Shown here piece by piece: positions 31,606-63,010 of a DNA stretch of 64,000 bases. Each line of letters opens with the position of its first letter. Position 1 is the stretch's first letter. The notes under the pieces were generated by a model. The model searched no databases. It saw nothing but the letters and a program-made list of their open reading frames with translations, and had not been told where the DNA came from. The translations under genes and the position numbers were made by a program. The DNA comes from Adineta vaga (taxonomy: Eukaryota > Animalia > Rotifera), in assembly GCA_021613535.1 (NCBI GenBank), contig CP075494.1:11842001-11906000 (forward strand). Direction: 5' to 3'.

Positions 31606-33039
31606 CTAGGATATTTGTAAAACAGATTGCATTAATGGCGCAAGCTCATCGGCACTTTGAGAAGTTTTTTTAGCTACGTCTCCTTTTGTTTCTCGTGCTA
31701 TTGAATGTGCTTTCATACAAGAGAAGATTAAATGAGAAAAAATAACTGAAGTTTGATCGTTACCAAAGCGTACATTTAAATAATTCCATAGAATATCAAC
31801 AAAAATATTTTGAGCAAAAAATGCTTTCGTCGATTCGACTAATGGCGGTTCGGCATAATCAGCTCCTTTGGAAAAGATACTAATTAATATCATTAATTTA
31901 AATATTAAATGATCGTTTGAACACAGATTTTGTAGTTTTCTTGTCCAGTCCATTATTCGGTGATAAACCGAATCCGAATAAGTACGCAGTGCCCTGGCTT
32001 CATAACAGCAATCATTGGTTGTTCCGGGTTCACGAAAAATTTCTGTTTCTGTATCGGTGCAAATACAAAAATGAAAACATGATATTGTGATTAAATTATG
32101 TTTCACAAGTACTAGACGATCATGTTCATTTAAGGACTAAAAGCAGAATCGTTTTTATAAATATCGAGAATATAATGACGTCACTATAACTTACACTGAA
32201 TTCTGGTGTTAATTTAAAAAATGTAACAAGTCGTAAACAGCTAACATGTGCCGGTTCGTTTACAACATCAACTATACCATCAAGACATCTTAAACATGGA
32301 CTATCAGAACCTTTAATGACGGCTATATTTAATTGCACAGCTTGTCTATAATGTTCTTCAATTCTGGTTAATGATATTCTTATATTTTCATCAAGAGAAT
32401 ACTTAAATTCATTCGAATCTGTACTGGATGAATCATCACATTTATTGCAAGAAGATTGTGAATAATCACCATCGAGTGGAGTCAAGAGTGATGAAGCTGA
32501 TGTTGATAACATTGACATCTCACGTAAACGACGATTATCTTCAATTTTACGTTTTTTTGTAAGTTTTTCTTCTTCAGACATGATCCATTCTTTTCGTAAA
32601 CCTTTTTGAAAACATTTTTTCAAACGACAATATTTACATTTCTAGAAAATTCTGATAAAAAGAAAGATTTTCTGGATATTTCACAAACTTTTCGAGTTTC
32701 TAGCGTAATCGGACAATCATTTGTGCCAACTCGACATTTGAATTTATTCTAAACAAAAAGTAAAATGTTATTTTTAAAGAGGTTAATATTGACATGGAAT
32801 ATACCATATTGTCTAGCGCATTACGTCGAAAAAATGCTTTACAACTTTCACAGGTTATTTGGTCGAAATTATAACCTAAATATATTGTAGATAAAAATAG
32901 GCGAAGCAAAAGCGTGAAGAAAAGTTCATCATGGATTATGATTCTTACCCATGGCTGGCGCATGGCATACAACACATATGAGATCACACCGATTACGGCG
33001 ACGAAGACTGCCATTCGAATGTGAACGTTTTGTATGCAT
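31606..33039 (-). CDS. Nuclear receptor, NR1J/NR1I (HR96/DAF-12/VDR-like), copy 1
   Basis: [30 protein letters not shown], a second zinc finger, GLRKEWIMS, ligand-binding domain FFKLTPEFSSLNEHDRLVLVK and C-terminal LAPLMQSVL. Confidence 0.9.
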
Positions 33040-34194
33040 TATGAATATGAAGAATTTTTATTTGAAAATATCTTTATTTAATATGAACTAGAATGAAAAA
33101 GAAGCACATTTTGATAGGTACGAAAAAGACCAATCAAGAATGCATTTAGATATACTCAATGATACTCGCAGTCTTACCAACAACTAATTTGACGAAAGAA
33201 AAAAGAGAAAAAATAAGAACATCGAAGTACAAGAGCTAGTCGGGTCGACAACAGAGAAGAAGACGAGAAAGGATCAGAGAACAGAAAAAGAAATAGAATA
33301 AAACAATGGTGACGTTGTTATGATAACGATGCATTTACGTGCTAAAAAAATGCAGTATTTATATAACAGTCATTTGATTTTGTATAAGATGATTAGAATG
33401 AACCATGTCGAGACAAGGTCAGCATATCTTCATGTTTTTTTCTGTCTCTATCAAGTCTGATAAAACATATTCATAAATTGGAATTGGAATTTAAGCTCGC
33501 GACAAAAATTCAAATCCGTCTTGAATTAATTGAAATCAAGATGCAATTCCTTCTTTAATTTCAAATCACTTAGTACGCGACCAATTTGACCGTAGTATTT
33601 GAAAGATTGATAGATTTAAGTATTTTTGTATCAGGATACTCTTATTGATAATTATATAGATTTCAATCTATAATAGATGCAAAACGACTTATTCATTTAT
33701 TTGAATTTTTCCTTCAGAGAATAATAGATAAGTCTGAACTTGATTTGCATTATAATCTGTAAGGGAGGCAAAAAACCAATTTTTCTTAGTTACAATACGT
33801 ACAAAAAGTTTGTTTTCATAAGAAATCACCTGATGAATTCCTAAAATAAGTAACATTTTCATATGACATATCTTGTTCTTTTTACCGAACATGTCTATGA
33901 ACTTTTTTTTAACATTAAATTTCACAGAAAACAAATATTTTCTATGGATCATCTTATCATTTGTATTCAAACATAATTAAATCGATTTTCATCATAAAAA
34001 AAAGTTACCATATCGAATTTATGGAACGTTACTATAAAATTCTATTTTTTTTCTTATTCAAAGAAAGAAAAACGTTTTGTTGCTGTAATATATATACAAA
34101 TACAACAGTAACGATAACAGAAGAGAGAGAGAGAGAGCGAGACAAAGGAAAAAATAATACACTTAGAATTTAAAAAATATCGCATCATATTGGT

Positions 34195-35665
34195 TTAAAT
34201 GTTCAATATAACTGATTTCATTAGTGGTACAAGTTGTTCAGCTACATCGTCATGCCGCACATAATTATAACGAGTATTGAAAGATTGTAAATGTGCTTCA
34301 ATCGAAGCGAAGACAAGTTTTGCCCAGATATCAATAGTTTTTTTACTACCAAAGTTATTTTCACAATATTTCCACAATAAATCGATAAAATGATTTTGTG
34401 TCTGCAGTATTGATAAAATATCATTTGCAATTGGTTCACATTCATTAGTATAGGTACATATGGCTGATCCTTTGGATAATAACATAACTATTAAAAATAT
34501 CTGTATAATAGTACGATCACTATTTGATGCTTCGACTAATCGACAAACGCAACGCGTCGATTGATGATATTGATGTAAACTGAAACATTGAATCATATCT
34601 TTTCCCGAGAACAGACAATCATCGACACCTGGTTCATGATAAGTATCAGCAACAGGATCATAAACTAATACTGAACGTATAAATACTAATGTAAATGTAT
34701 TATGTTTAATTAAAATCAATTTATCATGTTCGTTTAGCGATAAAAATTCGGGAATCAGTTTAAAATATGTGATCAAACGTGTTGTTTGAAGATTCATCGG
34801 AAGATTCATCATCTCCCATGGAGCATTAATTCGTGCTGTATATGGATATTGTGGTATTTCTGGTGGTAACGATGTTAGACGGACTGAATCATCATATGCT
34901 TGTTTCATTTGTTCAATTTTAAGTAAATCTCCAACAGATAATACACATGGAACATACAATGCTTGCGAGTCTTCATCATCGATAGGTTCAGTTTTAAGAT
35001 CAATATCGGATTGCTATTAAGCAAAAAAAAAGAAAATAATTACATTCGATTGATGTATTTGTTAATTTAAAACAGACTTCATCAGATTCTATTGGATCGG
35101 GATAGATCAATCGACGAAGTTGACGATTTTCTTCGATTTTTCGTCGTTTATTTAAACGTTCTTCATCTGTTAATATCCAATCAGCTCTCATTCCTGTAGA
35201 AAAACCAAAAACAATCGAATGATTATTTTAAATAAGATGATTTCAAACCTTTTTCGAAACACTTTGCTAAACGACATGCTTTACAACGTTTTCGCGTTGT
35301 TACTGTTACAATACAATTTCCATCACTAGCTCGACATTTAAATTTATCCTAGAAAACAAAACATTTTTTATTTTGAACATAAAGTTTTTATTCCAAATAT
35401 GTATCCATACATTCGTTCGTAGAGCATTTCGTCGAAAAAATGCTTTACAAGATTCACATGTAATTGCATCAAAATTATAACCATGTGCTGGTCCTTCACA
35501 TATGCTGCAAATTAATCCTTCCGGTTTTTTTCGCACATAACTGGCACGTCGTTGTTGATTGTCGTAACTGATTGATGAATCATTGTTTTCATATTCATTA
35601 TCGTTTGGGATATTATGTTGACGACGAACAACGCGTTTTCGATATCGGACATTGTTTATACTCAT
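34195..35665 (-). CDS. Nuclear receptor, NR1J/NR1I-like, copy 2
   Basis: [60 protein letters not shown] and LVPLMKSVI. Confidence 0.9.
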
Positions 35666-36537
35666 AATCAGTTGTGGAAATTTATAAAAAAAAGAATTAC
35701 AAGATCGATGGATTAAAAAAAAGGGGCTTGTTTTTCTCAAATAAATGACGATGAAAAAGAAAACGAAAAAGAAAGAAAGAAAGAAAGAAAGAAAGAAAAA
35801 AAGTTACTTTAAATAAACAAGGTAAAAGTATACAAAATATAGAACGAGAAAAAAATGAGAGAAACTATCAACTTGATGACGCGAACTCTACAACGATTTA
35901 ATAAGTAACTCGCTAATAAGAAGATGAGAATTCGCGTTTTTATACTTGAAAAAATTCTATTGAAAACGCATAGATTTTACTCAAATCGTGTTCAAGTTTA
36001 ACAGAAAGAATGATGTTTTTAGTTCATGGAATATACTATTCTACACTTCGATAAACTTTCTTCCAGCAAGCTGTCGGATATATATTTTTGAAGTAAAAAG
36101 GAATAACAAAAAAATAGAACAGAACGGAAAGAATGCTGTTCTTGCTCTATGCTAATGTGATGACGACATTGGTTTCTCAAGCTATGTTATTCGACGAATG
36201 ATGATGATGAGGAAAGTAAAAGAGAAGAAACTATGAAAAAAACAACAAGCCTCTAAAGAGAAAAGAAAGAGAGTTCGCTAGTTAACCAATGATCATTCAT
36301 CCTTTCTTTACCATTCACCTGGAATGTGACATACAGTAAAGTAAAGTAATTCTTATATATAAAAATAATGAATGTACTTTTTTCACCTCAAATAATATTC
36401 AAAAAAGAAAGGCAATTATTTGCCTATAACACATTAGAAAGAGTATGATCTTTACTTGAAGTTACTTTTTTTTAAAGAAGAAAATAATTCGACAAGAGGA
36501 ATGAAAAAAAATGTACCCGAAGAATTTTCTCTACTGT

Positions 36538-36554
36538 TAGAATCACGTGAATGA
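36538..36554. promoter_or_regulatory. Conserved 17-bp E-box element (TAGAATCACGTGAATGA), copy 1
   Basis: Identical to 40610-40626; lies upstream of nuclear receptor copy 2. Confidence 0.45.
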
Positions 36555-36970
36555 TGATTGAGTAATAAATATGTATAAGACATAGTCTTTCTTGATTCTT
36601 ACATATCGATCCGTCGAAAAGATTAAAAATGGATAGATTTTTTTAAAATAAATTCACAATGGACGAGAGGAAAACAATACTTTGGATTTTCATAATAATT
36701 ATTTCAGTTTTCTCTTTTTTTCTATAGCAATAAGATTTTATTATGTGAAATATATGTAACATATGGATCCTCTTACATATTCACGTCGGAGTATCACATT
36801 GCCTACAATGTGTTGTTTCGTTACTCTTTGACGTCAGTCACATTATAACAATAAATGCATCTGTTTTATTATATTCGAATTTCAATCCTATTTTCATACT
36901 AATAGAGAAAAGAAAGATCAATTGGTTAATTTCGACATATTTTCTTTATTTTTCGAATCAAACCATCATT

Positions 36971-39187
36971 TTAATTATTAGATGAAGTCGTATCAGGTAA
37001 TTGTAAAACACTTTGCATCAATGGTGATAATTCTGCTGCATTAATAATTTCATGTGTTATATTTTTGAAATGTATAGACAAACGTCGGATTGAAAATAAT
37101 GAATTGATCAAATTTGTAAATAAATTTATTGTTTTCTTCAAACCATACTGATGTAAACAATATTTATATAATATTTCTACATAGATATTTTGTATATTAA
37201 ATACCATACGTGCATTATTTAATGATGGTTCATAAGGAAGATCGTATGCACAGAAACCTTTGATATAAATAATAATTAAGAGAAGAATTTTAACAATCAC
37301 ACGATCGTACTGAAGTATTCTAATTAATTTTGCGACTGTTGTTGTTATATCATGATAGAATTCTTCACCTAGAATTTCAATCCAATCTTTGCCTTGAAAA
37401 TTAGGATCTTGTGTATTACGTTCATGATATGTATCGTCAATAGGATCATATATTAGAACAATATGCATGAAAATCGCTGCTAATAGATTATGTTTAACTA
37501 ATATAATGCGATCTCCAAGCTCTAATAATCTGAATTCTTCTGTTTTTTTTAAATATGTAATGAGGCGTAATGATGAGAGATAAGTTGGTATACGAATTAA
37601 TTCAAGTGTTGTATGAATGAAATGACTAGCAGGATAAAGTGGTACACCAACAACTTGGTTATATGCCATTGCTTCGGTATATGCGGTTTGAATTTGATCA
37701 ATTTTCGACCATTCAAATTCTGTCATTAAGAAAGCAGATATGTCAGTTGTTTGCCGAGGTGGTGGAGAACCATCATCAGAATTACTGTTATCACTTTTAG
37801 ACTAAACGAAAGAATAAAGATTTGAAAGAGTTTCTTTATGAAAGTCTTACACCAGTTCGGGAACTATGACGATGTACAGGTGATTCCTGAGTTTGTTTGA
37901 GACGACGTTTTTCTTCTACACTATGTTTTTTTTTTTGTTTTCTAAATATATAAATCATCATTTAGTAATTATAGAATACAATCAATCTCTTATAGTCATC
38001 AATTTTGTTTTGCAACGAATTATAAAAACTAATCCTTTTACACGTTTTCTTTAAAGATGCAGATAAGGCTGGTAATGCAAATGTACAATAGATTATACAA
38101 TTACGCTGTCAACTCTCTCCGTAAAACAACAAATAATAATGAAAAATCTTTACTATCATAAGATCAAATAAGAAATCAATTCAATAGACGTACTCATCTT
38201 CGGAGAGAATCCATTCTTTTCGCATACCTAAAAATAAGAAATACAATAGAAAAACAAACAAACTATCATAGAAATCATTTTACCCATTTGGAAACATTTA
38301 TTCAATCGACATCGTTTACATCGTCTTCTAGATTCCATAGTTATTTCACAGTTTCCAGCACCACGACATTTCAGTCTATCCTATAACAAGATTCAATGTA
38401 TGATGGCTATTCCAAAAAATTCGTAATACATAATAAATGATCAATGTAGCTGGCTGAAATAAGAATCAAATTGAATAACAATGGAAGTAAAAATTGCGAA
38501 TTTCAAGGTAAGAAGTAGAATTATCTTTATTTACTATGATCCGCTTCCTTACTGTTATATCTCTGCAATTAAATAGAATTAATTTTTTTAATCCCCTATA
38601 ACATATGTATGTATATTTCATTATGCATGATCAATATGATTCTATCGAAAGTTTTTAAAATGCTATCCTATAACCTCTTAAAAACACTTGTAGTCACAAA
38701 CAAGAATAAATCTAATTAAGCAAATTATTCTCATTATCTTTCCAATACGCGAGAAGGTTTCACATTCGTGTTCTTTTTTTCTTATATAATTATAACTTTG
38801 ATGTTGTCACTTCACTCACGATCCAAACATGTCCAAACTAACAATATAATTAAGTTAATCTTCTAGCTAAAGGTCATTGTATTCAATAAAATTCTAATTA
38901 AAAATTTTACCGGTGGTCGTAATGCATTTCGACGAAAGAATGCTTTACAAGATTCACATGAAATAGCATCAAAATTGTATCCTAAAATAAAAAATTATGA
39001 TTCTCTATGAATAATTAAAATTTATTCGATTACCGTATGCATCATCACCACAAACAACACATTTAAGAAAAGCTCGTGAACGTTTATTTATTTGTTTATG
39101 TTCATTAGATAAATAATTATTCGTTTTGGAAATCACAGGAATTTGACCATCAACTAATTGATCGTTATCTTTGTGTCGTTTTGCCAT
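36971..39187 (-). CDS. Nuclear receptor, NR1J/NR1I-like, copy 3
   Basis: [60 protein letters not shown] and LSPLMQSVL. Confidence 0.9.
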
Positions 39188-40609
39188 TTTAAATCATTTA
39201 TTTAAGTTTGAAAACGATTAATAGTAATAATAATTGCTCTAGAAAATTGTATTAAATGTAACTATAAATGTAGTCCATCATTTCAAAAGAAAGTATTATA
39301 TTCTTTTATCTTAGTAGAATGACAGAATATACGAGATATTCTTTATTGAATTCCTTTAACCTTAGTAGTACGAAGAAAAAAAGACGCGTAATTACATTCA
39401 TATATTCTTTCAGCTTGGAAGAAAATCGAATCGAAGGAAAGGAAGAAAAAAAACGTGTAACGAAGAAAAATATTCTGCGTCGACCTTTACGAACGACGAT
39501 TATTCTTTTCCCTCTACTATCTGACTTTATTATCCAAAAATTGTAGATTTGAATTCATATTGCATGCATAAATATGAACTAATTAAATAAAATTATTCAT
39601 GCAAATTATTTGTAGTTTCTTGAAAAAAAGTTCTACTCTTTTATAAAATTCCAGAAATTAGTTCTGAAGTACGTCAGAGAACGCCGACTTATTCATAGCA
39701 CATCCATCTATATATAGAAAATGTAAACTAATAAAAAAATGACATTGTATTATGAAGTTTATGGATTTTTCATAATTCGAAGATTCTTTCTAAAGAAAAG
39801 TCAGTGTTCGTCAGAAATTTGAAAACTGTAAGAAGTCCATAGGAAGATACTCCGTATTCGGATCTTTCGGAAATAATATCAGTTTTAGCTAAAATCTTTC
39901 TTTTTAGCTGAAAAAATCGATGATTTTTATAATCCACTTTTTGAAAAGCACGTTTTCTTATTCAACTAGACTGTCAATTTTAGTGGAATATTTTTATTAC
40001 ACATGTGGTCTTCTGAACTGCGCAAAAGAATAATAGAATTCTGAAAACCTAGTTATGTGGTGCCCTCTATCGTGACATGGCTGTTTGATAGAAACACACA
40101 GGAAAACGTAGCATAAAATGGGACGAGAAATTCTGAATTTAAATTAAGCTCTTTTCTGCTTTTTGTTTGTTGGTTATCTCCACGACATGTTATCATTTAA
40201 GGCTGAAAGTTCTACTGTAAACCTTTACAATACAGCCTCAACATATCCCGAAAATTTCACCAATTTTGACTGAGTAAAAGAAACTCAGGACTCGAAGGGT
40301 TAAAAGAAGAATAACTTTAATAGATAAATCTGATAGACTAGCGTTCGTGTTGTTATTATCTTTTTTTCGCTCTCTGATGACCTCGTTTTTACATTCTTAA
40401 GTGTGCGTGAGTTAAAAATAGAACCAGATAGATTTCATCATGTGAATTTAGTACGATGATATTCGTATTGAGAAAACATGAAATTCTTTCTAAAATATAT
40501 TTAAAATCAACTACATGATTATAAAATGTCATCAGAAAGCACATCATCGAATGAATTTTCTTTCTGGCGGCAGATTAAAAGTATTTATAAACAGTAACCG
40601 AAAAACGTG

Positions 40610-40626
40610 TAGAATCACGTGAATGA
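40610..40626. promoter_or_regulatory. Conserved 17-bp E-box element (TAGAATCACGTGAATGA), copy 2
   Basis: Identical to 36538-36554; lies upstream of nuclear receptor copy 3. Confidence 0.45.
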
Positions 40627-41315
40627 GTGTGACCGTTTTTCTTTTATTCATGACCTACCTCATAAAAGTTTTCCATGTGTAAAATAGTTTCCAGATGAAT
40701 AAGCAAGGCTTATATAGCCGTTAATTAACGAATCAAAAATTGACAATTAAACTATCGAAAAGCAAAAAAAAATGAAATTATCCTATATAGAATTATCCAT
40801 ACAATCGGATCGAATTTTGTAAATATCTCTTTTATTTCTATATACTCAAAAACTCATTTAATCGTAGGTTAATTTAATGTTTGCCTACAGCCGAAGAAGT
40901 CAATTTTTTTGAAAGCATTATCAGATCGTAAGTTATAAAGTTCAAAAGGACTATTACGTAATGAATTCCCAAGATTTATCACAAAAAGTAGTCTAAAAGC
41001 GTTCTCCTATGTTGATATATAACGAGTATAAAATTCATTACATACCCTATTCTGGTACTTTTGAACAAAATATCATCGACACATCAGTACATATTATCTC
41101 AATTTCAGAGAGTATTTTATTTCATAATCTTGACCATATCATTGAATCTTTTTTCACTATGTAAATGTCCTCGTTGAATATATAATCTAGAAAAACGAAA
41201 TATTTCACAACATACATATAGAAACACAATAAAAAGAGTTTGAATAATAATCTTCAATCGGTTCATATTCGACCAAGTATTCTGTTTTGTAAAGAATCAA
41301 ATCAATTTCATATAT

Positions 41316-42737
41316 TTATAAAAGACTTTGCATTAATGTCGATAATTTTGTTATATCAAGATGATTATGAATGGTTAAACGAAGTTCAGATATTAATTTT
41401 TCTATTTTCATAATACTATTGACATATTGTAGATATAATTTTAATGATTTAGGTAATCCATAATGATCTAAAGAATACTTCCAGAATAATTCATTGTAGA
41501 TACTTTGAGCTTTGTAGATATTTAATGTATTGAAATTAGTCGATGAAGATTTTGAAACGAAATCGTTAGAAAAGAGAATAATTAAAAAGAAAATGATCAT
41601 TATTTGACCATCGATCTGATGAATTTCATTGAGATCAATACGAATTTGCTTTATTTGTTGATGAAATTCTTTATTGATTGTTTTGATCCAATCTGTTTCC
41701 AAAAATATTGGATCATTTGTATAAGGTTCGTGATAGTTTACATTTTCTGCATCATAGATAACGATAGAATGTAAGAAAACAATTGCTAAAGTGTTTAGTT
41801 TAACTAAATGAACTTGTTCATCGATAGTTAATTGTTGAAATTCACATATATGTTTGAAATAAGTTATCAAACGCATAGATGAAAGTAAGAGAGGTATGGA
41901 AAACAAATCCATTGTTGATCCAATTGATTGAATTGATGGATATTTTGATATGCCAATTATCTGATTTAATCTTACTGCTTTTCTATAAGCATTTTGAAGA
42001 TGTTTGATCTTGTAAACATCAGTTTTAGTCAAATAGTTTCGTTTGAAAATTGGCGATACCGAAAGAATTCTTTTGTCATGAGGTATGATCTAATGAAAAG
42101 AAACGAGAATAAAAATGATCTTATCAAGTAAATTTATACTTCATTTTTTTCAAATTCTTGATATTCTCTCAAACGACGATTTTCTTCAATTCTTCGTCGT
42201 TTTGATTCTTTTCTAAAATGAATTTTAGTTTCTTTCTAATTATTTCATCAAGAAATAGAGCAACAAATCTTACTCTGTTTCTGTTAGAATCCATTCTTTA
42301 CGCATACCTAAATATAAATGAGATCATTCTATCAATATATTCATTTGATCTTACCTGCAACAAAACATTTAGCTAAGCGACATTTTTTACATCGTTTTTT
42401 CTCATCAAATCTTGTATTACAATGGTTGTCTTGCGGACATTTCAATTTTCCCTATGAAAATCTTCTATACAAACAAACAGTGTCTGGATTAATTCGAATC
42501 ATTACCGGTGCCCTAAGTGCATTACGACGAAAGAATGCTTTACAAGATTCACATGAAACTGCATCGAAATTATAACCTAAAAAAAGAGGTGAATATCAAA
42601 ATCATTTATTTTCTCAAGCATTTACCATATGCAACATTCCCACAAACAACACATGTCAGATCTATTGTACGATTTTTTTTTGTAAGTTTTCTTCGTCGAA
42701 CATTGGGTTGTTCATGCAGACGATTTAATGGTTCCAT
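41316..42737 (-). CDS. Nuclear receptor, NR1J/NR1I-like, copy 4
   Basis: [60 protein letters not shown] and LSTLMQSLL. Confidence 0.9.
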
Positions 42738-46724: not shown

Positions 46725-48454
46725 ATGCTCGTGCGGAAAACGCAGAGTAAAAAGAAATCAACAACAGGTGGAGCTGCTGTTCTTCCATTAGACAGTAGTT
46801 TAACATCAATAGAATGGCTACCAAATATGCAAATAGGAGAAGGTTCACCATCAATCTCAAATATAACAGAACCATTAACATCGAATACATCATTACCAAC
46901 AACACCTATCAAACACTCATTACCTATAACTAATAATTTTCAACAAAAACTTGAAGCCATCGAAGTAGAAATACCAACTACAACTGTTAATGATAATATG
47001 CACGTCAAACCACCTTTCAGTTATGTCACATTAATTCGTCAAGCTATACAAAGTACAAGAATGCAACGAATGACATTAAATGAAATCTATCAATGGATTG
47101 TTGATTCTTATCCGTATTTTCGCACAGCACCACCTAAATGGAAGGTTAGATTTTGAAATATGATTCGACTAAAATCGCTTTTTATTTTAATCAAAATATT
47201 TTCTTCTAGAATTCTATTCGTCATAATTTATCATTAAATAAATGTTTCAAACGACTTCAAAGAAGTACCAATGATCCTGGAAAAGTATATCATATTTTTT
47301 AATTTATTATTTACTTAAAATGATTATATTTATATTAGGGTTCATATTGGGCAGTCGATGAATCATCGGATACTAACAATCAATTGAATTCTCGTAAACG
47401 AAAAGTAAGAATATATATATATGTTCTCATCAATGAAAAATTCTTATCACAATCTTATATTCAGCTCGAAGAAATACAACCGTCACCTCATATATTACCA
47501 TTATCACCTGGTGGTTTAATTCAACAACCACATGGTTTCTATACAAATAATAATCCAATGATATGTGGAGATATTTCTAGTGTTGGAGGACAATCATCAT
47601 CAACAGATGAATCAGATTCAACTATGTCTCTTGCTAACAATGTAAGTTCATTTTTATTTCTTATGATCTTCTCTTATCTATTTTCTTTTCCTAGCAATCT
47701 TTACTTCCATGGGATGGTTTAAATATTGACTTAACTGCATCATTCCGTCGATTTCGTGAGCAAGTTTTAGATGCTCCAAATCTATTATCGACAACAAATC
47801 TCGGTATGATCAAACGATATACTCTTCTGTTTTCTTATTATATCTGAACTTGAAATTGTCTTCATAGATCTCTCATCTGCCAATCCACATAATACAACGA
47901 CTTGGAGTCATGATCTATTTCCTAATGGAGAAACGAACAGTTTTTTTGAGAGTATCAAACTTGCATCAAGTGGAGAAATCAATTGGAATGAAATTGATGT
48001 TAAACCCTATTGCGGTAAAACTCATAAATATAGTTTAATTATTGAAGAAAATTTTCCATTCTAGAATTTCTTGATGGTTTTCGAACAAATTCAACATTTC
48101 AACCACAAGATCGTAATAAATTAATTAATCTTGCATCATCACTTTCATCCTTTTTTGATTATACTGGAATTACTAATTTAGCGCAATCAAGAATTGCAAG
48201 TAAATCTATAAAATAATATAATTCGATTGAAAAAATTTTTTGTTAATAATTGTATTATCATCTAGATGAATCATTTTCTGGTAATCGATTACCAACAATA
48301 TCTCAAAGATTAACACCAGAACCAATGCATAATGTAAAAAAGATCTTCTTTCTCTCTTTCATATTTTCTCAATATTTTTTTACTTTAACAGACGAATTCA
48401 CTTCCAGTTGTCATCGAAGAAGAACCAACGTTTGATTGGGATTCGATTACATAA
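46725..48454 (+). CDS. Forkhead box transcription factor, FoxJ2/3-like
   Basis: N-terminal [11 protein letters not shown], forkhead domain [10 protein letters not shown]...[15 protein letters not shown]...DPGKGSYW and C-terminal FDWDSIT, typical of FoxJ2/3. Confidence 0.9.
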
Positions 48455-50343: not shown

Positions 50344-50954
50344 TTATTGTAATGATGGAATTTCATTGTTAAGTACTTGAGTGTAAGTTCTCCAAAAACA
50401 ACCTTTATCACCTCGTGTAGCAGCGCCTTGTCCATAGATTTTATCAATCTAATAAAATTAGATAAAATCGCGATGAAAAGAAAAGGTTCATTGATTTCTA
50501 ATTTTACCGTTTCGATTGGTTTATGAGTACAACTGTTAGCACAGTCGCACATTGGTCCACAATTATCTGCAGCCTTCTTCTTGCGCTAAAACATAGAGAT
50601 CAAAATGTGGAAAAAACTTTTCCTTAAATCTTTTCTCACCATAGTAACTGGATAATCTTCGACACATTTGTAACAAGCCTCGAGACAAGCTAAATCTTCA
50701 AGATATCTAGATGATGGTTCATTTGACATTGGTACAACTGATGATAAACCTTGTTGTTTCTGTCCGTCTATACTATAAATTGTATTAGTTTCTGTATCGA
50801 TTAATTTACCCATAATATTTCGTATAGTACGTTGTTGATCATTACTTCGAGAAAGTCGATTTAAATGATGTCTGTTCATTTTGACATCATTCGTAGTAAA
50901 AGCCCAGTTCACGCCAGCAAACACAATAATTGAGAGAAAGAAGAAGCTGACCAT
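50344..50954 (-). CDS. Secreted Cys-rich peptide precursor (eclosion-hormone-like cysteine pattern)
   Basis: Exons 50954-50640, 50585-50508 and 50448-50344 splice in frame: signal peptide, pro-region, then CLEACYKC...CGPMCDCANSC...C (8 Cys). Gene model is well supported; family assignment is tentative. Confidence 0.7.
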
Positions 50955-52604: not shown

Positions 52605-55348
52605 TTACTCTGGCATAGCACAGCATACGATTCTCACTCGTCCAGTACCACCTGGTAATCCTAATGGTGCGCTACCAATTTGTGAGAAGCCACCAGCCTG
52701 AGGAAAGCCACCGTATTGTGGAAAAGCAGGTTGTTGAGGAAAACTATTGAATTGTGGGTAAGCACTTGGTTGAGGATAGGCAGCTGCCTGTGGATAAGCA
52801 CTTTGCTGAGGGAAGCCACCAAATTGTGGGTAAGCAGATGGTTGTGGATAAGCAGAAGCTTGAGGAAAACCAGCTCCGGGATAGCTGCTATAGGATTGTT
52901 GTGGAAAACCACCGTATGATGGTTGTGGTAGGGCACTATACGATGCTTGTTGTGGAAACGCTCCAAACGATTGTTGTGGATAAATGCTACTTAGTTGTGG
53001 TTGTTGTTGCGGAAAGCCACCATAACCACCGAAGCTTTGTTGACCATAGCTGGCAAGTCCAGTTTGAGGGTATCCTCCAAATGACTGTTGTGGATACATG
53101 CTACTAAATTGTGCTTGCATTTGAGGAAATCCACCATATCCTCCAAGACTTTGTTGACCATAACTTGCGAGACCAGTTTGAGGATATCCACCAAATGATT
53201 GTTGAGGATACGCACTACCAAACTGTGGTTGCATTTGAGAAAAACCACCAACTGCACCAAAGCTTTGTTGACCATAACCTGCGAGACCAGTTTGAGGATA
53301 TCCACCGTAACTTGCTTGTCCAAATCCACCATAACTTGGTTGACTAATACCACCATAACCTGCTTGTCCAAATCCACCATAACTTGGTTGACTAATACCA
53401 CCATAACCTGCTTGTCCAAATCCACCATAACTTGGTTGACTAATACCACCATAACCTGCTTGTCCGAATCCACCATAACTTGGTTGACTAATACCACCGT
53501 AACCTGCTTGTCCAAATCCACCATAACTTGGTTGACTAATACCACCGTAACCTGCTTGTCCGAATCCACCATAACTTGGTTGACTGATACCTCCATAACC
53601 TGATTGACCAAATCCACCATAACTTGGTTGGCTGAATCCACCGTAACTGGCTTGTCCAAATCCACCATAACTTGGTTGACTGATACCTCCATAACCTGAT
53701 TGACCAAATCCACTGAAACTTCCATACGGATTTGCACCAATACCTTTAGAAAAAACAAACATGAGTAAATTGAAAGAACAAAAAACTAGTTTGGTATTAA
53801 TTACTTGGTAGTCCCCCATATCCACCAAGACCTCCAAATTGTGGTAATGCTTGACTGGAACCTAAATGGAACATCAAATTAGTATAGAATATTTCTCAAA
53901 CAGAAATTCGCACCTCCATATGAAGATAATCCACCATAACCACCTCCCATACCGGGTGGACAGTATGGTTGCTGTTGTGCAATAGGCATTTGTGGAGCTA
54001 TAGAAGGTAACTGGAGTGACATTGAACAGCAATTTGGACCCATTTGAGGCATTGGCAATTGGGGCATTGGCATTTGTGGCATCATTGGTGCTGGAGCACA
54101 AGGCATTTGAGGCATTGGCAATTGGGGCATCATTGGTGCTGGAGCACAAGGCATTTGCGGCATTGGCAATTGGGGCATTGGCATTGGTGGCATTATAGGC
54201 ATTGGCATCGGTGGGGGAGCACATGGCATTTGGGGCATCATTGGTGGCATGATTGGGGGTGGTGCACAGGGCATTTGTGGCATTGGCATTGGCATTGGCA
54301 TTGGCATTGGGGGTGGTGCACAGGGCATTTGGGGCATTTGCATTGGCATTGGCATTGGCATTGGGGGTGGTGCACAAGGCATTTGTGGCATTATTGGTGG
54401 CATGATTGGTGGTGGTGCACAAGGCATTTGAGGCATTGGCATTGGCATTGGCATTGGTGGTGGAGCACAGGGCATTTGCATTGGCATTGGTGGTGGTGCA
54501 CAGGGCATTTGCATTGGCATTGGTGGTGGTGCACAGGGCATTTGCATTGGCATTGGTGGTGGTGCACAGGGCATTTGCATTGGTGGTGGTGCACAGGGCA
54601 TTTGCATTGGCATTGGTGGTGGTGCACAGGGCATTTGCATTGGCATTGGTGGTGGTGCACAGGGCATTTGCATTGGCATTGGTGGTGGTGCACAGGGCAT
54701 TTGCATTGGCATTGGTGGTGGTGCACAGGGCATTTGCATTGGCATTGGTGGTGGTGCACAGGGCATTTGCATTGGCATTGGTGGGGGAGCACAGGGCATT
54801 TGCATTGGCATTTGCATTGGCATTGGTGGTGGCGCACAGGGCATTTGCATTGGCATTGGTGGTGGAGCACAGGGCATTTGCATTGGCATTTGCATTGGCA
54901 TTTGCATAGGTGCTGGAGCACAGGGCATTTGTGGCATTTGCATTGGCATTTGCATGGGTGCTGGACCGCAAGGCATTTGAGGCATTGGCATTGGCATAGG
55001 CATTGGTGATCCACCACATCCACCCTGTTGGAGTAAGTTTTGGAATACACCGACTATATGATTTGGTACGCAAATCTGACGGACTTTTGGTCCACCCAAA
55101 CCCCCTGAAAGTATTGGATTAAAACCCGGTGGATATACACTACCGTATCCACCGAGTCCTCCTAGAGGAGGTTTCACAGATGTAATAAATGGTCCATCAG
55201 TTAAACCATAACCTATTGGATAACCTCCTCCGCTTGGTTGATAAGATGAACCGTAATTTTCGATATCCCCATAATTATTATAAGCCTCATAAGGGGCACC
55301 ATAATTGGCGATATCATTTCCTTGAACACGAGCATTACGACCTCCCAT
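52605..55348 (-). CDS. Low-complexity Pro/Met/Gln/Cys- and Gly/Tyr/Gln-repeat protein A (3 exons, ~880 aa)
   Basis: Exons 55348-53914, 53861-53805 and 53743-52605 join in frame (both introns phase 1). MG start, (MPMQMPCAPPP)n, (GGFGQAGYGGISQPSY)n and C-terminal PGGTGRVRIVCCAMPE. Confidence 0.85.
53310..53710 (-). repeat. Coding 48-nt tandem repeat (GGFGQAGYGGISQPSY), about 8 copies
   Basis: Direct repeats visible in both the DNA and the translation. Confidence 0.9.
54040..55005 (-). repeat. Coding tandem repeat with ~33-nt core (MPMQMPCAPPP) built on TGGCAT hexamers
   Basis: Near-identical units gcacagggcatttgcattggcattggtggtggt at ~54465-54800, degenerating towards both edges. Confidence 0.9.
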
Positions 55349-57687
55349 TATAAATATTTAAGAATTTATTTGAAGAGTATTTATATGAATATAAATGATT
55401 GTATTGTAGTGGATGGAATTGATGAGAAAACGAAACTGTTGAGCTGTTTAACAAATAGTAATATACAAATATAAAATAATTTTACTTGTTTATATATGAA
55501 AACTTATATCTTTTTCCTACCTTCGGTTTTGGTTAAAGGGGGAGTGGTTGAAGTTCTAGACGCAGACTGCGACTATATTAATATGAATGATTAGAACACC
55601 CTACATATAGAACCTCAAACCTTCTCTTTTTCTCTCTTCTTCCATGATCAATCGACCGCAGCCAAATTGTTAATGCAAAAAGAGAGAAAACGAGAGAAAT
55701 ATCACATGAACATTTCAATCTTCTATCCTCTCTTCTGTTGCATCCTTGTCTAAGGCCAACTTATGTCTTTTTCTTGGTCTTCGTGTTCGTCATTTCTCTC
55801 TCTCTTCGTCTTTCTCTCTTATCTAGTCACTTTTGGTCTCATTTTTTTTTCACGATTGGTGTAATTGCCTTTTTTAGTGAGTGTCTTTGCCGCCATCAGT
55901 GATGGCCTCACGAGTTTGAGATGGCGCGGTTATAATGAAAGACCTTGTTTTTACTTTGTACGTTCACTTGATTAATCGAATGAATAGATAGAACGAAACT
56001 ATGCATAGTATGCTTATTGTACAATACTGATGAATACCAGTGTGACAATTATATCGTCGCCCAACTAACAGACTAACTTGTCACACGCTTGTTATGAGTG
56101 TGGAATTGATTTCTTTCTCTTTCGCTTATATACTTGAGTAGAAGGTTTTCGTAATATATGTGTTAAAATGAATGTGATTGCTTCATCATCGTCAACTGAT
56201 AGACGGAACACAATCGATAACATACAAAGATTTTCATCATATTTTAACACTTTCATTAAATAGAACAAGAAGAGAAAGAGAGATGATAAAATATTTCGAG
56301 CGAGAAAAGAAAACGAAGAGTACTTTTTCAATAACACATCATCATTTTTTATTCTCAATTCTTTCTATTACATATTAGATCAAAATCATCAATCAAGTTT
56401 TATTTTAATGACCTTGTTCATTCAAATTGAAATAGTAGTTAACAAGAAATGTATTAACATCATGTAAAAATTTGATCAGATTCAGAACGACATCTTAGTT
56501 TTAGTATGTCTTTGTTTTATTGGACATTCTTTCATAATACTTTAAAACACTGAATATCGATGAAAATATTTTTCACCTTCCTTCAGACAAGGACAATTGA
56601 TACATATCGTCTTCATCGAATTAATTTTTGAATGCAGCTCATAATCGATTTTTTGAGAGATTTATGTTGCGTATGATGAATATTCAGACTTGTTATTATG
56701 TCTTGATTAAATCATTTTGTCAGAAGTGTAATAGTAGATTGAATAACTATCTGGATCATCATTATTCATTTCACGTCTATCACTAACAAGGAAAAACTTA
56801 GTAGTGCGTAACGTGTATCTTTAGTGACAAACATACATTTATTTATCTATCAATATCTGTCTATCAAATGAGTATGTCTAGTGAAATATACAAATCAGAA
56901 TGACAGCTATCAAAACCGCACAAATATTTAATATTTCGTTACTTTTACTAGTCCCTATCAGACCAAAATGAAGAGAAAAAAAGCTATCATCACGATCATA
57001 ATTAACTAGCTTCTTTTTAACATGTCTTTATATATACATATGTACATAGATAGATACATACATATATATATATGTATGATAAAAAAAAATTTAGATACAT
57101 TTCCGTTAGAAAATGATTAATAATTATTTCTGTGTAAATATGAAGACGTAGATAGGTGAAAGAAAAATCGAGTATAATTTGAGATAGTAAAATATATTTA
57201 TATTTTCTTCATTTATTTTTCTTGTCTAAACAAACTTTAATAAATGCGGCAATATGACAAACAGACACGCAGAAGAAAGTGAAAAGAGATCTATAAACAA
57301 AAAAAAAAATGGGAAGAAAACTCGACTAAAAACATCCTAAATCTGCGATGAAATATGAGCGTACAATCGTATAAGGAAACATCAATAAGCATTCTAATTA
57401 AATAGTAAGATAAATAGTGTCTTTAAATAAAATCGAACAAGTTTACTTGTTCAAAATAAATTGCATATATGCATATGTATGTGTCGATTGTTATTTGTTT
57501 GCTTGTTTGTTTGGAAAGAAAAAGTATTCTATTGAGTTGGACTATTATTAAACGACAAATTTTTGTGATAGTTTCTTTTATGAGCCCAGAAACACAAGAG
57601 TAAAAAGGAAGCAAGATGCGATTACACAGCAAAAGAAAAAGATCAAAAAAGAAAACAAATGTCTAACTGATAATCTAGAATGGAGTC

Positions 57688-60341
57688 TTAATTAGGAGCT
57701 GGAAAGCAACAGCAAATCATACGACCACTGCCTCCGGGTGCACCGCTTGGAGGTGGTTGAAATCCACCATATTGTTGTTGAGGTGGAGGTGGAAACGATG
57801 GTGGTGGTGGGGGTGGGGGTACATGAAATTGATCGGATTGACCGAAGCTAGGACCAGATTGTTGGAAGGCTGGTGGTGGTGGTGGTGGAGGAGGTGAATA
57901 GATTTGTTGTGGAGGTGGTGGCGGTAGTTGTTGTTGTGGTGGAGCAAAGTTAGGTGGTGGAGCAAAACTTGGTGGTGGTGGAGGAGGAGCGAAATTAGGT
58001 GGTGGAGGTGGTGGAGAAAAGCTTGGTGGTGGAGCAAAACTTGGTGGAGGAGGAAAGCTTGGTGGTGGAGCTTGGAATGATGGTTGTTGACCAATTGGTT
58101 GAGGAACTGGTACAGGTACTGGATATGGATGAGGATATGGTTGAGGAACTGGATCTAGATAATCAAATATCATTTTTTTTTCAATATAATTATCTTGCAA
58201 ATAAAAATTAAATTCTTACATGATTGAGGACCTGGAGCAGGTGGTGGGAATTGTGGTTGTGAGAATTGTGGTTGAGGAAATTGTGGTGGTGGTGCGGCTT
58301 GCATCTGTTGATAAGGTTGCATCAATGGCGCACCAACTGCTTGTAATGAACGCATCATACCCATTGGTGGAGCTTGAGCACCTACAATAAAATAAGTTGT
58401 TAGAAAAAAATAGAACTTCATATTGGAACATTTTGTTAAAATCCAAAATAAATTAGTATTTATTTTTACGTACCGAAATCACCACCTACTGGACAGTTTG
58501 GAGGAAATCCACCCATTTGTGGGGCTCCAAATCCTCCCATTTGTGGGGCACCAAATCCTCCCATTTGTGGGGCACCGAATCCTCCCATTTGTGGGGCTCC
58601 AAATCCTCCCATTTGTGGGGCACCGAATCCTCCCATTTGTGGGGCACCGAATCCTCCCATTTGTGGAGCACCGAATCCTCCCATTTGTGGAGCACCGAAT
58701 CCTCCCATTTGTGGAGCACCAAATCCTCCCATTTGTGGGGCACCAAAACCGCCCATTGATGGAATACCGGTAAATCCGGTGCCATAACCTATTATTGAAA
58801 TAGATTTTGCATAACTAATCTATCAATGCAATTTATAATAAAACATACCAGCACCAGCAGCACCTCCATAGGAAGCCAAACCACCGATACCTCCACCCTC
58901 AAAATATTCAAAAATCAAATAGTCAGTCATGCATCATTGATTTCTATATGAGACGATTCATATCGATGATGCACGCATAGTCGTTACCATTACGTAGACA
59001 AATTTATTTTACTTCGATAAAGTGTCAATGAAGATAGTGAATGACACAACATTGGTAGAGAACTACCGTAGCCTATGAATAATTATACAACATATATATT
59101 TTTCGAGAAAATATAGAAATAAACTAACCACCACTGAATCCACCGACGGCACCGCCAAATGGCATACCGCCACCCATTCCGAAACTAGCACCACCAAATG
59201 GCATACCGCCACCCATTCCAAAACCACCGCCAAGTGGTTGACCACCACCATAGCTGGCGAGGCCTATATTTTTCATACACAAAAAAGGCTATCTTTATCA
59301 ATAACATTTAAAATCAAGCAAAAAACGTACCACCGCCGAAACCGCCACCCATTGGTGGACACATAGGTTGTTGCATTGGCATAGGCATTTGAGGCATTGG
59401 CATAGGTGGTGGACACATCTGTTGGGGCATTTGCATTGGCATCTGAGGCATTGGCATTGGCATTGGCATTGGTGGTGGACACATCTGTTGGGGCATTGGC
59501 ATTGGTGGTGGACACATTTGTTGGGGCATTGGCATTGGCATCTGAGGCATTGGCATTGGCATTGGTGGTGGACACATCTGTTGGGGCATTTGCATTGGCA
59601 TCTGAGGCATTGGCATTGGCATTGGCATTGGCATTGGTGGTGGACACATCTGTTGGGGCATTGGCATTGGCATTGGTGGTGGACACATCTGTTGGGGCAT
59701 TGGCATTGGCATTGGTGGTGGACACATTGGTTGAGGCATTGGCATAGGCATGGGCATTTGTGGCATTGGCATTGGTGGACATGCTTGAGGCATAGGCATG
59801 GACATTGGCATTTGTGGCATTGGCATGGGGCAAGCTGATTGTGGAAATCTACAACAGAACAATATATTAATTATTTTGTATATTTTATCAAAACAATATA
59901 GAATTAATGTACTTACCCACCAGCAGCAGCACCACCTTGTGGGATGAAAATGACACGAATTTTAGGGGGAAGACCACCTCCTAAACCACCCATGCCACCA
60001 AGACCATAGCTACCAAGAGCACTTGAACCACCCATACCTAGTGGGGAACCGATGGGTGCTCGAGGAACAACAGCTGTAGTTACGTATCCTGTTCCGAATC
60101 CACCAGTTGGAAAACCACCTCCAGTTGGGTAAGCGCCACCAGTTGGATAGCCGCCACCATCTGAAAAATTTATATATGCATGTCAGTATGGAACCCAAGT
60201 AAATGAAAAGAAATTCAATCAAGACTTACAAGATACTGGATCATAAGCTCCTCCATAATAATCCATTCCATAGTTAGGATCATAGGGTTGACCATATCCT
60301 GAAAGACCAGGTTGTTGACGACGATTTACTCGATTTCCCAT
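57688..60341 (-). CDS. Low-complexity Pro/Met/Gln/Gly/Cys-repeat protein B (multi-exon, paralog-like to protein A)
   Basis: MGNRVNRRQQ start, GGLPPKIRVIFIP, (MPMPQQMCPPP)n, (MGGFGAPQ)n, poly-Pro and C-terminal PGGSGRMICCCFPAPN. Splicing between 58849 and 59129 is ambiguous. Confidence 0.8.
58512..58756 (-). repeat. Coding 24-nt tandem repeat (MGGFGAPQ), about 10 copies
   Basis: Direct repeats of ccatttgtgg(g/a)gcaccgaatcctc. Confidence 0.9.
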
Positions 60342-62567
60342 TTTGTCTAATATATTGCTGTATAACTAATCTAGTGCCTAGAACTAATAGAAAATATTTT
60401 ATATAAAATTCAATCATCAATAACTATATTTCATGTTTCCTCAAAAAGTAGCGGTAAAAATTTGTTTGTAATACTGCTGTCACACACTCACACACACACA
60501 CATATATATATATACATATATGTATATACTCTACCTACTCTTCTTCAAATGACGACCACGGCTGTCGATCTGGAGTAATCGATCTAATATGAATGCTTCT
60601 TATTTTATAGGTAAGCGGTTTCACCTTTGCTTCTTAGTTAACAACACAGGAGGAAGAGAGAGAGAGAGAGAAAAAAAAAAGAAAAATAGAAGAGAAGAAG
60701 TTTTTTCTGGTCGAAAAAAAACTTGCCCAGACGTTTGTCCCTAATTTTGAGGACGAAAATTGCACGATACAATTGGTTTATCATATCTTTCTTCGTATCG
60801 TCCATGCATCAGTCAGCGACGCAGAGAGGAAACGAAGGTTACTAATGCTAGTAATGGCATAAAAAAAAGAGAAATATGTTTTCTGTCGTCCACGGCCGTT
60901 TTGTCTATGGCAGAGAGAGAGAGAGAGACGAAAAGAGACAGAGAGAAAGAGAAGGAGACGAAAATGATTTTATTTACCACATTTATATTCACGGCCGGAA
61001 AACCGCGTATAATTTACCTGAACGTAGTTGTTGCTTTTAAAAACGAATGGTTATAAATGAAACGTTTTGTTCGAACGCATGCGAAAATAGAAATTGATCA
61101 GAAAGAAAAATTGACAAGTTACCATTTCATTTAACATGTGTATATATTTTTTTTCTGATAACCTTGTCGTTGATGAGTTGAAAAGGGTGCTTGCCTTTAC
61201 ACTAAAGATAGTGTGAGAGAGTGAGAAAAAGAGAAAGAAAATAAAGAAGAGACGTTTTTTGTAATCAATTTGATTGATCATCAATTTTTTTGTGGTTTCG
61301 CTTGATGTCTAACTATAATAACTATTTATTACGCTTTCAAGGTTAACACAACAAACTAAAGTGATCAACAAAACATCACTGAAACTGTGATATACAAGTT
61401 AAGATACATCAATGTATATTTCGAAGAGAGAAAAATAAACTTGTAATGAGCGTGAGAAGGAGAATTACTTTTTACCGATAATATCTAGGTAAACAAGTGT
61501 GATAATATATGCTTGTTGAATGCTTCAAGGCAAGTGCTGTTAATGAATAATAAACAATTTTTCATTTGCAATTTAATAGTGACTTAATTAATAATAATTA
61601 GTTTCAATTTGTGATGAAATGAAATTTTCTTCTCGATCAACACTCTTCAATATTCAATATCAAAATAAATTGATTCAATGCTACTCAAATGTATAATAAA
61701 TAACAACAAAATAGTAGACAAACTCCATTTCACTTACGACTTGAGAGTAATATTTGAAAATTAATCTCTACGACAACATTTTAATCATTAATAGTTATTC
61801 TCGGTTTTACATGTTGACAAATGAGTCGGATTTGTATTGCTTATATACATCTATTAAACATAGATATTACCGTTAGAAACGATTATTTTTAGTTTAACTT
61901 TACATATCTCTTTTTTACCTATTGTTTTTTTTAAATGTTTTTCTCTCTCTCCCTTTTCATTTCTTCAGTAGATCAATAACAACCTTCTTTTCAATAATAT
62001 TAGCAATACAGAAACAAGAAAGTATCCTTTTTGTTGCACATATTAATCGTAAAAAAATTATAAGAAATATTAGAGTCACTCCATGGTTGATTGCTTCACA
62101 CCACAATATCTATGCATGTACATATCACTTAACCACACCTCATCAACGTCATTTTTTTCTTATTAATTGAAATCATTTTTTTCAAAAGACTAGTTTTCGT
62201 CTTCTTCCTCTTCTCTCCTCCTCTCTTACTTTTTTTTCTCTGCTTTTACTCATCTACATTTTTATTTCATAGTCAGCAACATATTCACTCATTCGATGAT
62301 CAATTTCATTACATGTACTCTGATCTATATCTAATTCATATATCTTCCCTCTTTTCTTTTGCTGTTCTTCTTATACATATAAATCTGTGCATATCAATTC
62401 TAATGACTATTTTCTTTTTCTCACTTCGTTTTAACGTAGTTATTATAATCACCTCCTCAATAGATCAACGATCATCATTAACGCAATAAAAAATATACAA
62501 ACATGTGCTTTTTTTGCAGTTAAAAGATAGTTTGCTTCGTATATGTTTTGTATTTTTTTTAGATAGA

Positions 62568-63010
62568 ATGAACCGAGGACCCGCTCAAAGACAATTACAA
62601 GGTGCTCCAGCAATGAATCCGTAATTTTATGTCTTTTTTTTTTAAAGTTTATCCCTGGTTTTTTTTTTCATAGTCATGCACCAAGAAAACTTCCTGATCG
62701 CCGAGTGGGAGCTGGATTTCCTGGCGGTAACGGTGCCGGATACAATACAACTGCAAATGTTGAACCATGGGCAGTAACAGAATGGACTGAATATTACATT
62801 CCAACTGTTGCTGGTAATAAACGTCCCGTTATTTATGTTGCCGCTCCATTAAATCAATGTGCTATGGGTGGCATGGGTGGCATGGGTGGCATGGGTGGTA
62901 TGGGTGGTATGGGTGGTTTAGGAGGTATGGGTGGCATGGGAAGTTTAGGAGGTATGGGTGGTATGCGAAGTTTAGGAGGTATGGGCGGTGGATTTCCAAT
63001 GCGTCGCTAA
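62568..63010 (+). CDS. Small Gly/Met-rich protein C with a (GGM)n tail
   Basis: Two exons: MNRGPAQRQLQGAPAMNP-HAPRKLPDRRVGAG...EPWAVTEWTEYYIP...RPVIYVAAPLNQCA(MGG)n...RR*. Confidence 0.7.

Follow-up and report, generated by a model that had tools for sequence, protein, structure and literature searches.

The window is the whole stretch of Adineta vaga DNA that was analysed, 64,000 nt of contig CP075494.1 (positions 11,842,001 to 11,906,000). It contains three neighbouring genes, A, B and C, with B and C divergently oriented. The elements of the cluster are as follows.

52605–55348, minus strand: gene A, 876 amino acids; three exons (55348–53914, 53861–53805 and 53743–52605), with the frame open through two GT-AG introns
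57688–60341, minus strand: gene B, 674 amino acids; nine exons (60341–60230, 60160–59917, 59848–59331, 59263–59129, 59072–59050, 58897–58849, 58788–58474, 58381–58220 and 58154–57688), with the frame open
60383–60385, minus strand: spliced-leader addition site of B, seen as the loose end of a contig in RNA run X6, which we take to be the rotifer spliced leader
60530–60930: conserved non-coding block between B and C, about 70% identical in the two types of homoeologue and between genera
62568–63010, plus strand: gene C, 129 amino acids; two exons (62568–62620 and 62674–63010) whose joint is present in RNA; spliced leader added at 62561/62562

The two introns of A are placed from the reading frame and from its homoeologue; the C2 homoeologue is 63% identical over the head, and orthologues of A were also found. 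All eight exon joints of B are present in RNA contigs. Transcripts of B and C, in RNA from mixed cultures of several studies, are both spliced and trans-spliced, with the leader directly 5′ of the first ATG in each, so that a hidden signal-peptide exon is excluded there. The highest hydropathy over 19 residues is 0.87 for A, 0.84 for B and 0.99 for C; across the first 40 residues the maximum is −0.79. The description of the cluster in a sequence-only reading, as three neighbouring low-complexity genes lacking signal peptides, is borne out in every feature listed, as is the near-absence of charge from the repeats; A 114–437, A 480–860 and B 125–290 are entirely without charged residues. The proteins contain 2, 1 and 2 lysines (0–2 in most orthologues) and, in this copy, 29, 14 and 1 cysteines, for A, B and C respectively. 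From its conservation the block at 60530–60930 is a candidate for regulatory DNA shared by B and C.

Conservation within the proteins is confined to the ends and to short β-strand-like motifs, while the repeats turn over; between homoeologues the motifs are retained and the repeats are wholly different.

55328–55348, minus strand: N-terminus of A, MGGRNAR, with Gly2 in 9/9 A orthologues; a candidate myristoyl-plus-basic membrane anchor, the modification being putative
55064–55090, minus strand: core motif of A, PKVRQICVP, common to A and B and kept as PK(V/I)RxI(Y/F)xP in their orthologues
54038–55009, minus strand: Met/Pro/Gln/Cys repeat of A, with 22 cysteines and no charged residue; differs between homoeologues
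53999–54040, minus strand: second conserved motif of A, NCC and then a short hydrophobic strand; the C2 copy has it, as do A. ricciae and metagenomic A orthologues
52605–52652, minus strand: tail of A, GRVRIVCCAMPE, conserved in seven orthologues; not a CaaX box; candidate palmitoylation or disulfide site
59940–59966, minus strand: core motif of B, PKIRVIFIP, conserved in every B orthologue read
57688–57735, minus strand: tail of B, GRMICCCFPAPN, the same in the C2 copy and conserved among orthologues
62759–62848, plus strand: conserved core of C, EPW..W.EYYIPT-turn-RPVIYVAAP, the best-conserved part of the cluster in alignments and in 18 HMMER matches

Gly2 and the basic residues that follow it are present in 9/9 A and 12/12 B orthologues, some of them Src-like (MGSGKSK), and the CC tail of both proteins is maintained. 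The protein C of this window begins MNRG, lacking Gly2, and has a single cysteine and no CC tail. The cysteine-bearing repeats are lineage-specific; A of A. ricciae has four cysteines in 627 residues, and C orthologues have none or one. The Met/Cys repeat that the sequence-only reading saw in A and B is not a conserved feature of the family.

The order and orientation of A, B and C are the same in five named bdelloid species and in metagenomes. All the named organisms among the 18 matches found by HMMER with the C core are bdelloids, and at the sensitivity of that search no relatives were found outside them, monogononts and acanthocephalans included. Pfam gave no match to 13 protein pieces of the cluster, the spliced models being searched exon by exon, and the ESM Atlas none to two queries. 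A word search for relatives of B also found nothing, which says little given its length limit and the low complexity of the protein. For the C core AlphaFold produced only a low-confidence model (pLDDT 57). The earlier reading is supported in that the genes are clustered and their proteins intracellular, uncharged and outside any named family.

A and B have the features of N-myristoylated peripheral membrane proteins, namely Gly2, basic residues after it and no signal peptide. Judged from their sequences, it is plausible, at somewhat less than even odds, that A, B and C are lipid-anchored proteins of an internal scaffold. They would form an old bdelloid family, disordered and almost uncharged. 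Myristate on Gly2 together with the basic residues would tie them to the inner face of a membrane, and the CC tail of A and B, probably palmitoylated, would add to the anchoring; the conserved termini agree with the tethering suggested previously. The short β-strand-like motifs may mediate mutual binding, and the fast-changing repeats rich in Gly/Tyr/Phe or Pro/Gln/Met could condense into a mat. Its most likely site would be the epidermal intracytoplasmic lamina of bdelloids. The spliced-leader-defined N-termini, the lack of a hydrophobic segment and Gly2 in 21/21 A and B orthologues argue for an anchored scaffold, while the loss of Gly2 from C in this window and the low-confidence model of the C core count against it. 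An intracytoplasmic lamina is common to all Syndermata, monogononts and acanthocephalans included, and this range does not correspond to that of a bdelloid-only family.

The same mismatch would be accommodated if the proteins were structural elsewhere, in the egg envelope or vitellarium granules, trophi-forming cells, gland granules or the cortex of the ciliated corona. The sequence features would suit any membrane-lined intracellular scaffold, and the Gly/Tyr repeats are reminiscent of those carried by eggshell proteins; the absent signal peptide speaks against secreted shells, and the presence of transcripts in mixed-culture RNA of several studies also weighs against this reading, which we regard as unlikely. 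Membrane-coating condensates that protect against desiccation, in place of a permanent structure, are improbable. The proteins are indeed disordered, bdelloid-restricted and prion-like in composition, but they differ from LEA and CAHS proteins in being uncharged and hydrophobic, and the cluster is fully retained in R. magnacalcarata, which we take to be a non-desiccating species. Improbable too is a true analogue of cornification, in which transglutaminase and disulfides between repeats would crosslink the proteins as in SPRR and loricrin. The genes are clustered and the proteins intracellular, this copy has repeats of the Pro/Gln/Cys kind (29 cysteines in A and 14 in B), and SPRR, loricrin and keratin-associated proteins are likewise clustered, low in complexity, intracellular and subject to rapid repeat turnover. 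However, crosslinking of the SPRR type, put forward earlier, fails on the one or two lysines per protein and on cysteine repeats that other orthologues lack; there is no match to Pfam Cornifin or Loricrin. Unlike those vertebrate proteins, A, B and C lack lysine-rich ends, have lipid-anchor-like termini and multi-exon genes, and share no sequence homology with them. CYSTM proteins resemble the family in having a Pro/Gly/Tyr/Gln head, a basic β-strand motif and terminal cysteines, but A, B and C have no C-terminal Cys-rich transmembrane module (hydropathy maximum <1.0) and no Pfam match. Protist articulins have VPVP runs like those of B and a role in the membrane skeleton, whereas the alternating charges of articulins are missing here, and again Pfam finds no match.

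A feature that had been overlooked is found at 59049–58898, where the GT-AG rules do not allow B to be spliced. The elements of this insert are listed below, numbered from its ends.

58898–59049, minus strand: 152-nt insert in B, with ends TT..AG (GT..GA if shifted by one base) and in-frame stops; joint 58897/59050 in three RNA runs
59038–59045, minus strand: 5′ signals, with a helix strand at +5 to +10 and an invariant TTC(A/G) at +9 to +12
58980–58985, minus strand: partner strand of the covarying helix, at about +65 to +70, with 96% of its cells paired and 10 double changes (0/500 shuffles)
58907–58926, minus strand: 3′ signals, with a branch-point-like CTGAY and an invariant TGAA at −13 to −10; invariant columns in nine copies

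The joint 58897/59050 is identical in runs X1, X6 and X8, which come from three studies, and its depth equals that of neighbouring joints. There is no contig coverage inside the insert, and the depth of that bin is accounted for by exon 5 alone; this RNA evidence consists of assembled contigs from one species group. Nine homologous copies of 138–153 nt have the same layout. Their 5′ ends are TT, AT, AG or TG and their 3′ ends AG or TG; neither GT nor AG is conserved, and the two ends share a direct repeat of 1–2 nt. All nine keep the fixed spacing TG|N8-TTCR ... TGAA-N8-G|GG, in which the inverted TTCA/TGAA motifs are placed symmetrically, 8 nt from a shared G. The CTGAY is invariant about 26 nt from the end, accompanied by a U-rich tract, and conforms in sequence to a YTRAY-type branch point. 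The covarying helix contains many G-U pairs. End-to-end pairing (98% paired over 5 bp) is invariant and so shows no covariation. Overall identity is not raised relative to the neighbouring ordinary intron (0.635 against 0.629). No in-frame GT/GC-AG alternative lies near the insert ends in 4/9 copies. We conclude with high confidence that B carries an element of 138–153 nt which predates the bdelloid genome doubling, that this element is removed with base precision although it has no GT-AG ends, and that the frame from exon 5 to exon 6 needs its removal.

Several known types of element were considered and rejected. An assembly error is excluded by the layout common to nine copies, a coding insert by in-frame stops and lengths in all three phases, and a repeat family by the presence of a single locus with only two homoeologous copies. 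A micro-exon within the insert could, from the lengths of the contigs, be no more and no less than a single G, and AG-G-GT does not occur inside it. Standard U2 ends require GT or GC with AG in one register, and the RNA joint gives TT..AG or GT..GA; the RTATCCTT 5′ site and TCCTTAAC branch site of U12-type introns are absent from the alignment. Rfam, searched with the insert up to E = 5, gave no match to a group I or II intron, snoRNA or known ribozyme, and the motifs for bulge-helix-bulge, hammerhead and C/D snoRNA readings are not conserved across the copies. At each of its two sites IRE1 cuts CNG|NNG within a hairpin loop of 7 nt; C is found at −3 in one of nine 5′ sites and in none of the nine 3′ sites.

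Exact removal in RNA, fixed spacing, the covarying helix, the stops and an empty DNA site discussed below lead to either an unconventional intron or a somatically excised DNA element. We favour the former, with a probability of about 0.55–0.6; the insert would be removed at the RNA level, guided by its fold as in the nonconventional introns of Euglenozoa. Excision might be performed by the spliceosome, using the branch-point-like 3′ end and a 5′ end defined by structure, or, about as likely, by an endonuclease and an RNA ligase; both are tentative proposals. Three loci for RtcB and about six for Rnl-type ligases were found in the genome. Euglenozoan nonconventional introns likewise lack GT-AG, have a short terminal direct repeat and pairable ends, and are neither group I nor group II; RNase III plus a ligase has been proposed for their removal (PMC12621601). 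The B insert differs in being a single conserved animal locus, in having spacers fixed at 8 nt, a branch-point-like sequence at its 3′ end and a covarying helix inside it, and in the one empty DNA copy. Like the IRE1/RtcB substrates XBP1 and HAC1 it would be cut after G at both ends with restoration of frame, in a genome with RtcB genes, but it lacks CNG|NNG loops, its removal looks constitutive and the gene that carries it does not encode a bZIP factor. Introns that depart from GT/AG are also described in an animal for the tunicate Fritillaria, where non-canonical U2 introns are genome-wide with changed U1/U2AF (PMC13326754), whereas the B insert stands alone among canonical introns and has variable terminal dinucleotides.

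An observation less easily reconciled with removal as RNA comes from RSIL801, a single Rotaria animal. Its reference assembly has an exactly empty junction with both neighbouring introns present, and this is more easily explained by programmed, site-specific excision of the insert from the DNA of somatic nuclei expressing B, in which case the gene would be off in the germline and turned on by excision. In a second RSIL801 assembly, made from the same reads, that haplotype carries the full site, as do both alleles of the clonal line. The symmetric inverted motifs and the absence of an RNA contig over the insert also agree with excision, and internal eliminated sequences of ciliates and developmental excisions of bacteria similarly interrupt genes, leave a precise empty site and have inverted motifs near their ends. 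Unlike those, the insert is a single locus and not a family, and a search of the genome for tyrosine recombinases (PF00589) found none. Moreover the empty form occurs once in about 25 assemblies, and from amplified DNA; an identical product would also result from repair templated by RNA or from a fresh loss of the intron, and the G-U-rich covariation and the branch-point-like, U-rich 3′ end resemble RNA signals. We know of no programmed single-gene rearrangement by DNA excision in any rotifer, and consider it rather unlikely here. It is very improbable that the joint is an artefact of reverse transcriptase, and of phi29 in RSIL801, jumping a hairpin. Template switching is an established source of false introns (PMC13149111), and the ends lack splice signals and share the 1–2 nt repeat. 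Against this, the insert folds no more strongly than shuffles (z −0.9 to +0.7), skipping is complete in three studies, the retained form carries stops in 9/9 copies 5′ of conserved coding exons, and in lineage L015 the insert is missing and the exon is fused.

Taken together, an anchored scaffold for the proteins and an unconventional intron for the insert form the best overall explanation, at close to even odds, on the lower side. To our knowledge no protein of the rotifer intracytoplasmic lamina has been identified, and a literature search returned no paper on such proteins and none on such an intron in rotifers; A, B and C provide named targets for identifying them. We judge the insert to be the weightier of the two. 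Tunicate cases, tRNA and XBP1-type introns set aside, an intron of an animal mRNA that conserves neither GT nor AG and predates the bdelloid genome doubling would point to an undescribed route of splicing. If DNA excision were true instead, a further phylum would be shown to assemble a gene somatically in a programmed way.

The cluster comprises three neighbouring genes, each of which gives a spliced reading frame without internal stops.

Gene A, 55348-52605, minus strand: three exons, 876 amino acids, both introns inferred
Gene B, 60341-57688, minus strand: nine exons, 674 amino acids
Gene C, 62568-63010, plus strand: two exons, 129 amino acids

All eight joints of B occur in RNA contigs, every one of them in three or more of the four runs, and the exon joint of C occurs in contigs of two runs. 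RNA contigs of both B and C carry the rotifer spliced leader directly upstream of the first ATG, so these N-termini are real and lack a signal peptide. Hydropathy stays below 1.0 throughout A, B and C, and the repeat regions contain no charged residues. The sequence-only observation of a cluster of low-complexity repeat genes is borne out, except that C here starts MNRG and has one cysteine. A. vaga and A. steineri have lost Gly2 of C (62568-62576) in this homoeologue; it is kept in Rotaria and in the homoeologous cluster on C2. The final, Pro-rich exon of B has clustered substitutions and gaps at 57911-57929 in RNA runs X6 and X8, reflecting a second allele or another strain.

The window corresponds to C5:11842001-11906000 of the genome (100.8 Mb in six contigs). 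A search of this genome, made one exon at a time for the spliced models, finds exactly one further copy of each gene, all on C2, where neither gene order nor orientation differs. The repeats of the two homoeologous copies are unrelated; both keep the MG-basic start, the Tyr/Gly head, the PK(V/I)RxI(Y/F)xP motif and the GR..CC tail. The same arrangement, whole or to the contig limits, is present in A. ricciae, A. steineri, Rotaria sordida, R. magnacalcarata, R. sp. Silwood1, Didymodactylos and several metagenomes, and about 400 nt 5′ of B are ~70% identical across genera. A profile of the C core gave 18 real matches among 1.84 billion representatives, the named ones all bdelloid; one further match (E = 8e-4) was judged to be chance. 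Pfam, ESM Atlas and AlphaFold gave no usable result for the cluster proteins. Pairwise similarity of A and B is weak (E = 0.003), and it is the common heads and motifs that suggest that A, B and C form one family. The cluster is genuine: a family without a name, restricted to bdelloids and with a putative structural role. In one metagenome contig (L021:1589-2345) the C core is joined to the 3′ half of B via Gly-rich repeats, by misassembly or natural fusion.

Directly downstream of A, 50586-50954 (minus strand) and the following exons encode a secreted-looking precursor with a signal peptide, dibasic sites and a Cys-rich end, exon 1 of which has no Pfam match. It is kept on C2, and the A. ricciae model CAF1086991.1 wrongly fuses it to A. 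Elsewhere in the window lie a viperin-like gene (5013-5978), a run of several nuclear-receptor genes (31606-42032) and a forkhead gene (near 46725-48200).

Basic residues follow Gly2 in all 9 A orthologues and all 12 B orthologues; a Src-like MGSGKSK occurs in some of them. The terminal CC or CCC is located at least five residues before the protein end, so is not a CaaX box; palmitoylation or disulfides are possible. The chains would be tethered to the membrane and associate via short strands, with the aromatic, uncharged repeats driving condensation. A lamina within the syncytial epidermis has been described (PMC13403294). This intracytoplasmic lamina is the natural candidate for the location of A, B and C; the bdelloid-only range counts against a universal lamina protein, though such sequences evolve fast. 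Lysines are the usual transglutaminase acceptors, and A, B and C contain two, one and two respectively. With so few, and with a Cys-bearing repeat that is lineage-specific (A of A. ricciae has 4 Cys in 627 amino acids), the strict analogy with cornification fails.

Between exons 5 and 6 of B an insert of 152 nt (58898-59049, minus strand) is skipped in RNA contigs of three studies. The skipping joint is as deep as neighbouring joints, and the bin depth is that of exon 5 alone. Read on the coding strand, the insert starts with TT and ends with AG; a shift by the one repeated G turns this into GT..GA, and a GT..AG reading would remove 153 nt and break the frame. Nine distinct homologues measure 138-153 nt, starting with TT, AT, AG or TG and ending with AG or TG; several lack GT at the 5′ junction in both registers, and for four of the nine there is no canonical alternative close to the ends that stays in frame. 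The invariant elements are exon TG, eight bases and TTC(A/G) at the 5′ end, and CTGAY, TGAA, eight bases, G and then exon GG at the 3′ end. Retention introduces a translation stop in 9/9 copies, and the same removal rule, applied to the C2 copy, opens a 508-aa frame reaching the conserved tail. An insert-less lineage (L015) has a fused exon lacking the TG. The genome holds only two copies, both homoeologous, Rfam has no match to the insert, and literature searches found no published description of one like it. The insert did not pass as a member of the U2, U12, IRE1 or Rfam classes.

Exon 5 (59072-59050) is 23 nt in eight of nine copies and 20 nt in the C2 copy. Joint skipping of exons 5 and 6 would preserve the frame in the window, yet the RNA includes both. 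In many public annotations B is broken near the insert and given as two separate genes (L041-L048, L055-L058), as expected if gene finders are unable to splice it.

Within the insert a six-pair helix (+5 to +10 with about +65 to +70) covaries, with 96% pairing and 10 double changes. It was matched by 0/500 shuffles and lies above all slid controls, a lenient comparison as the helix was found in the same alignment. Because the pairing between the two ends never varies, it carries no information. The fold as a whole is unremarkable, and in overall identity the insert matches the neighbouring intron.

The most likely mechanism (probability about 0.55-0.6) is removal at the RNA level guided by the fold, favoured by covariation rich in G-U pairs and by a U-rich, branch-point-like 3′ end. 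The insert would then work like euglenozoan nonconventional introns (PMC12621601). RtcB is represented in the genome by three loci and Rnl-type RNA ligases by about six, and a search found no tyrosine recombinase; these results provide context for the mechanism, not proof. The RtcB loci lie at C3:8931334-8933015, C3:9037602-9038699 and C6:2403646-2404638 of the searched genome (G000); two of the three have long open frames, look intron-poor and were possibly acquired horizontally. That the joint is a polymerase artefact is very improbable, as this would require complete skipping of a weak fold across three studies.

Excision from somatic DNA is possible, if distinctly less probable than RNA-level removal. 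The symmetrical end motifs speak for it, as does a pair of R. sp. Silwood1 assemblies. GCA_905331515.1 contains the exact empty junction of A. vaga RNA with both adjacent introns, 23 and ~37 nt away, still present, and along gene B this 153-nt gap is its sole difference from GCA_905332295.1. Both were built from a single amplified animal, RSIL801 (run ERR4467437), of clonal line N17X, the former as the reference assembly and the latter as the maxhap assembly (PMC7943196 and supplement). The insert is present in both N17X alleles (10x assemblies), and the site is full in all other assemblies examined (~24). One animal thus apparently carries both forms on one haplotype; the empty site could reflect somatic excision, RNA-templated repair, new loss or an amplification jump. 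Either mechanism, RNA-level removal or DNA excision, would be unexpected to specialists.
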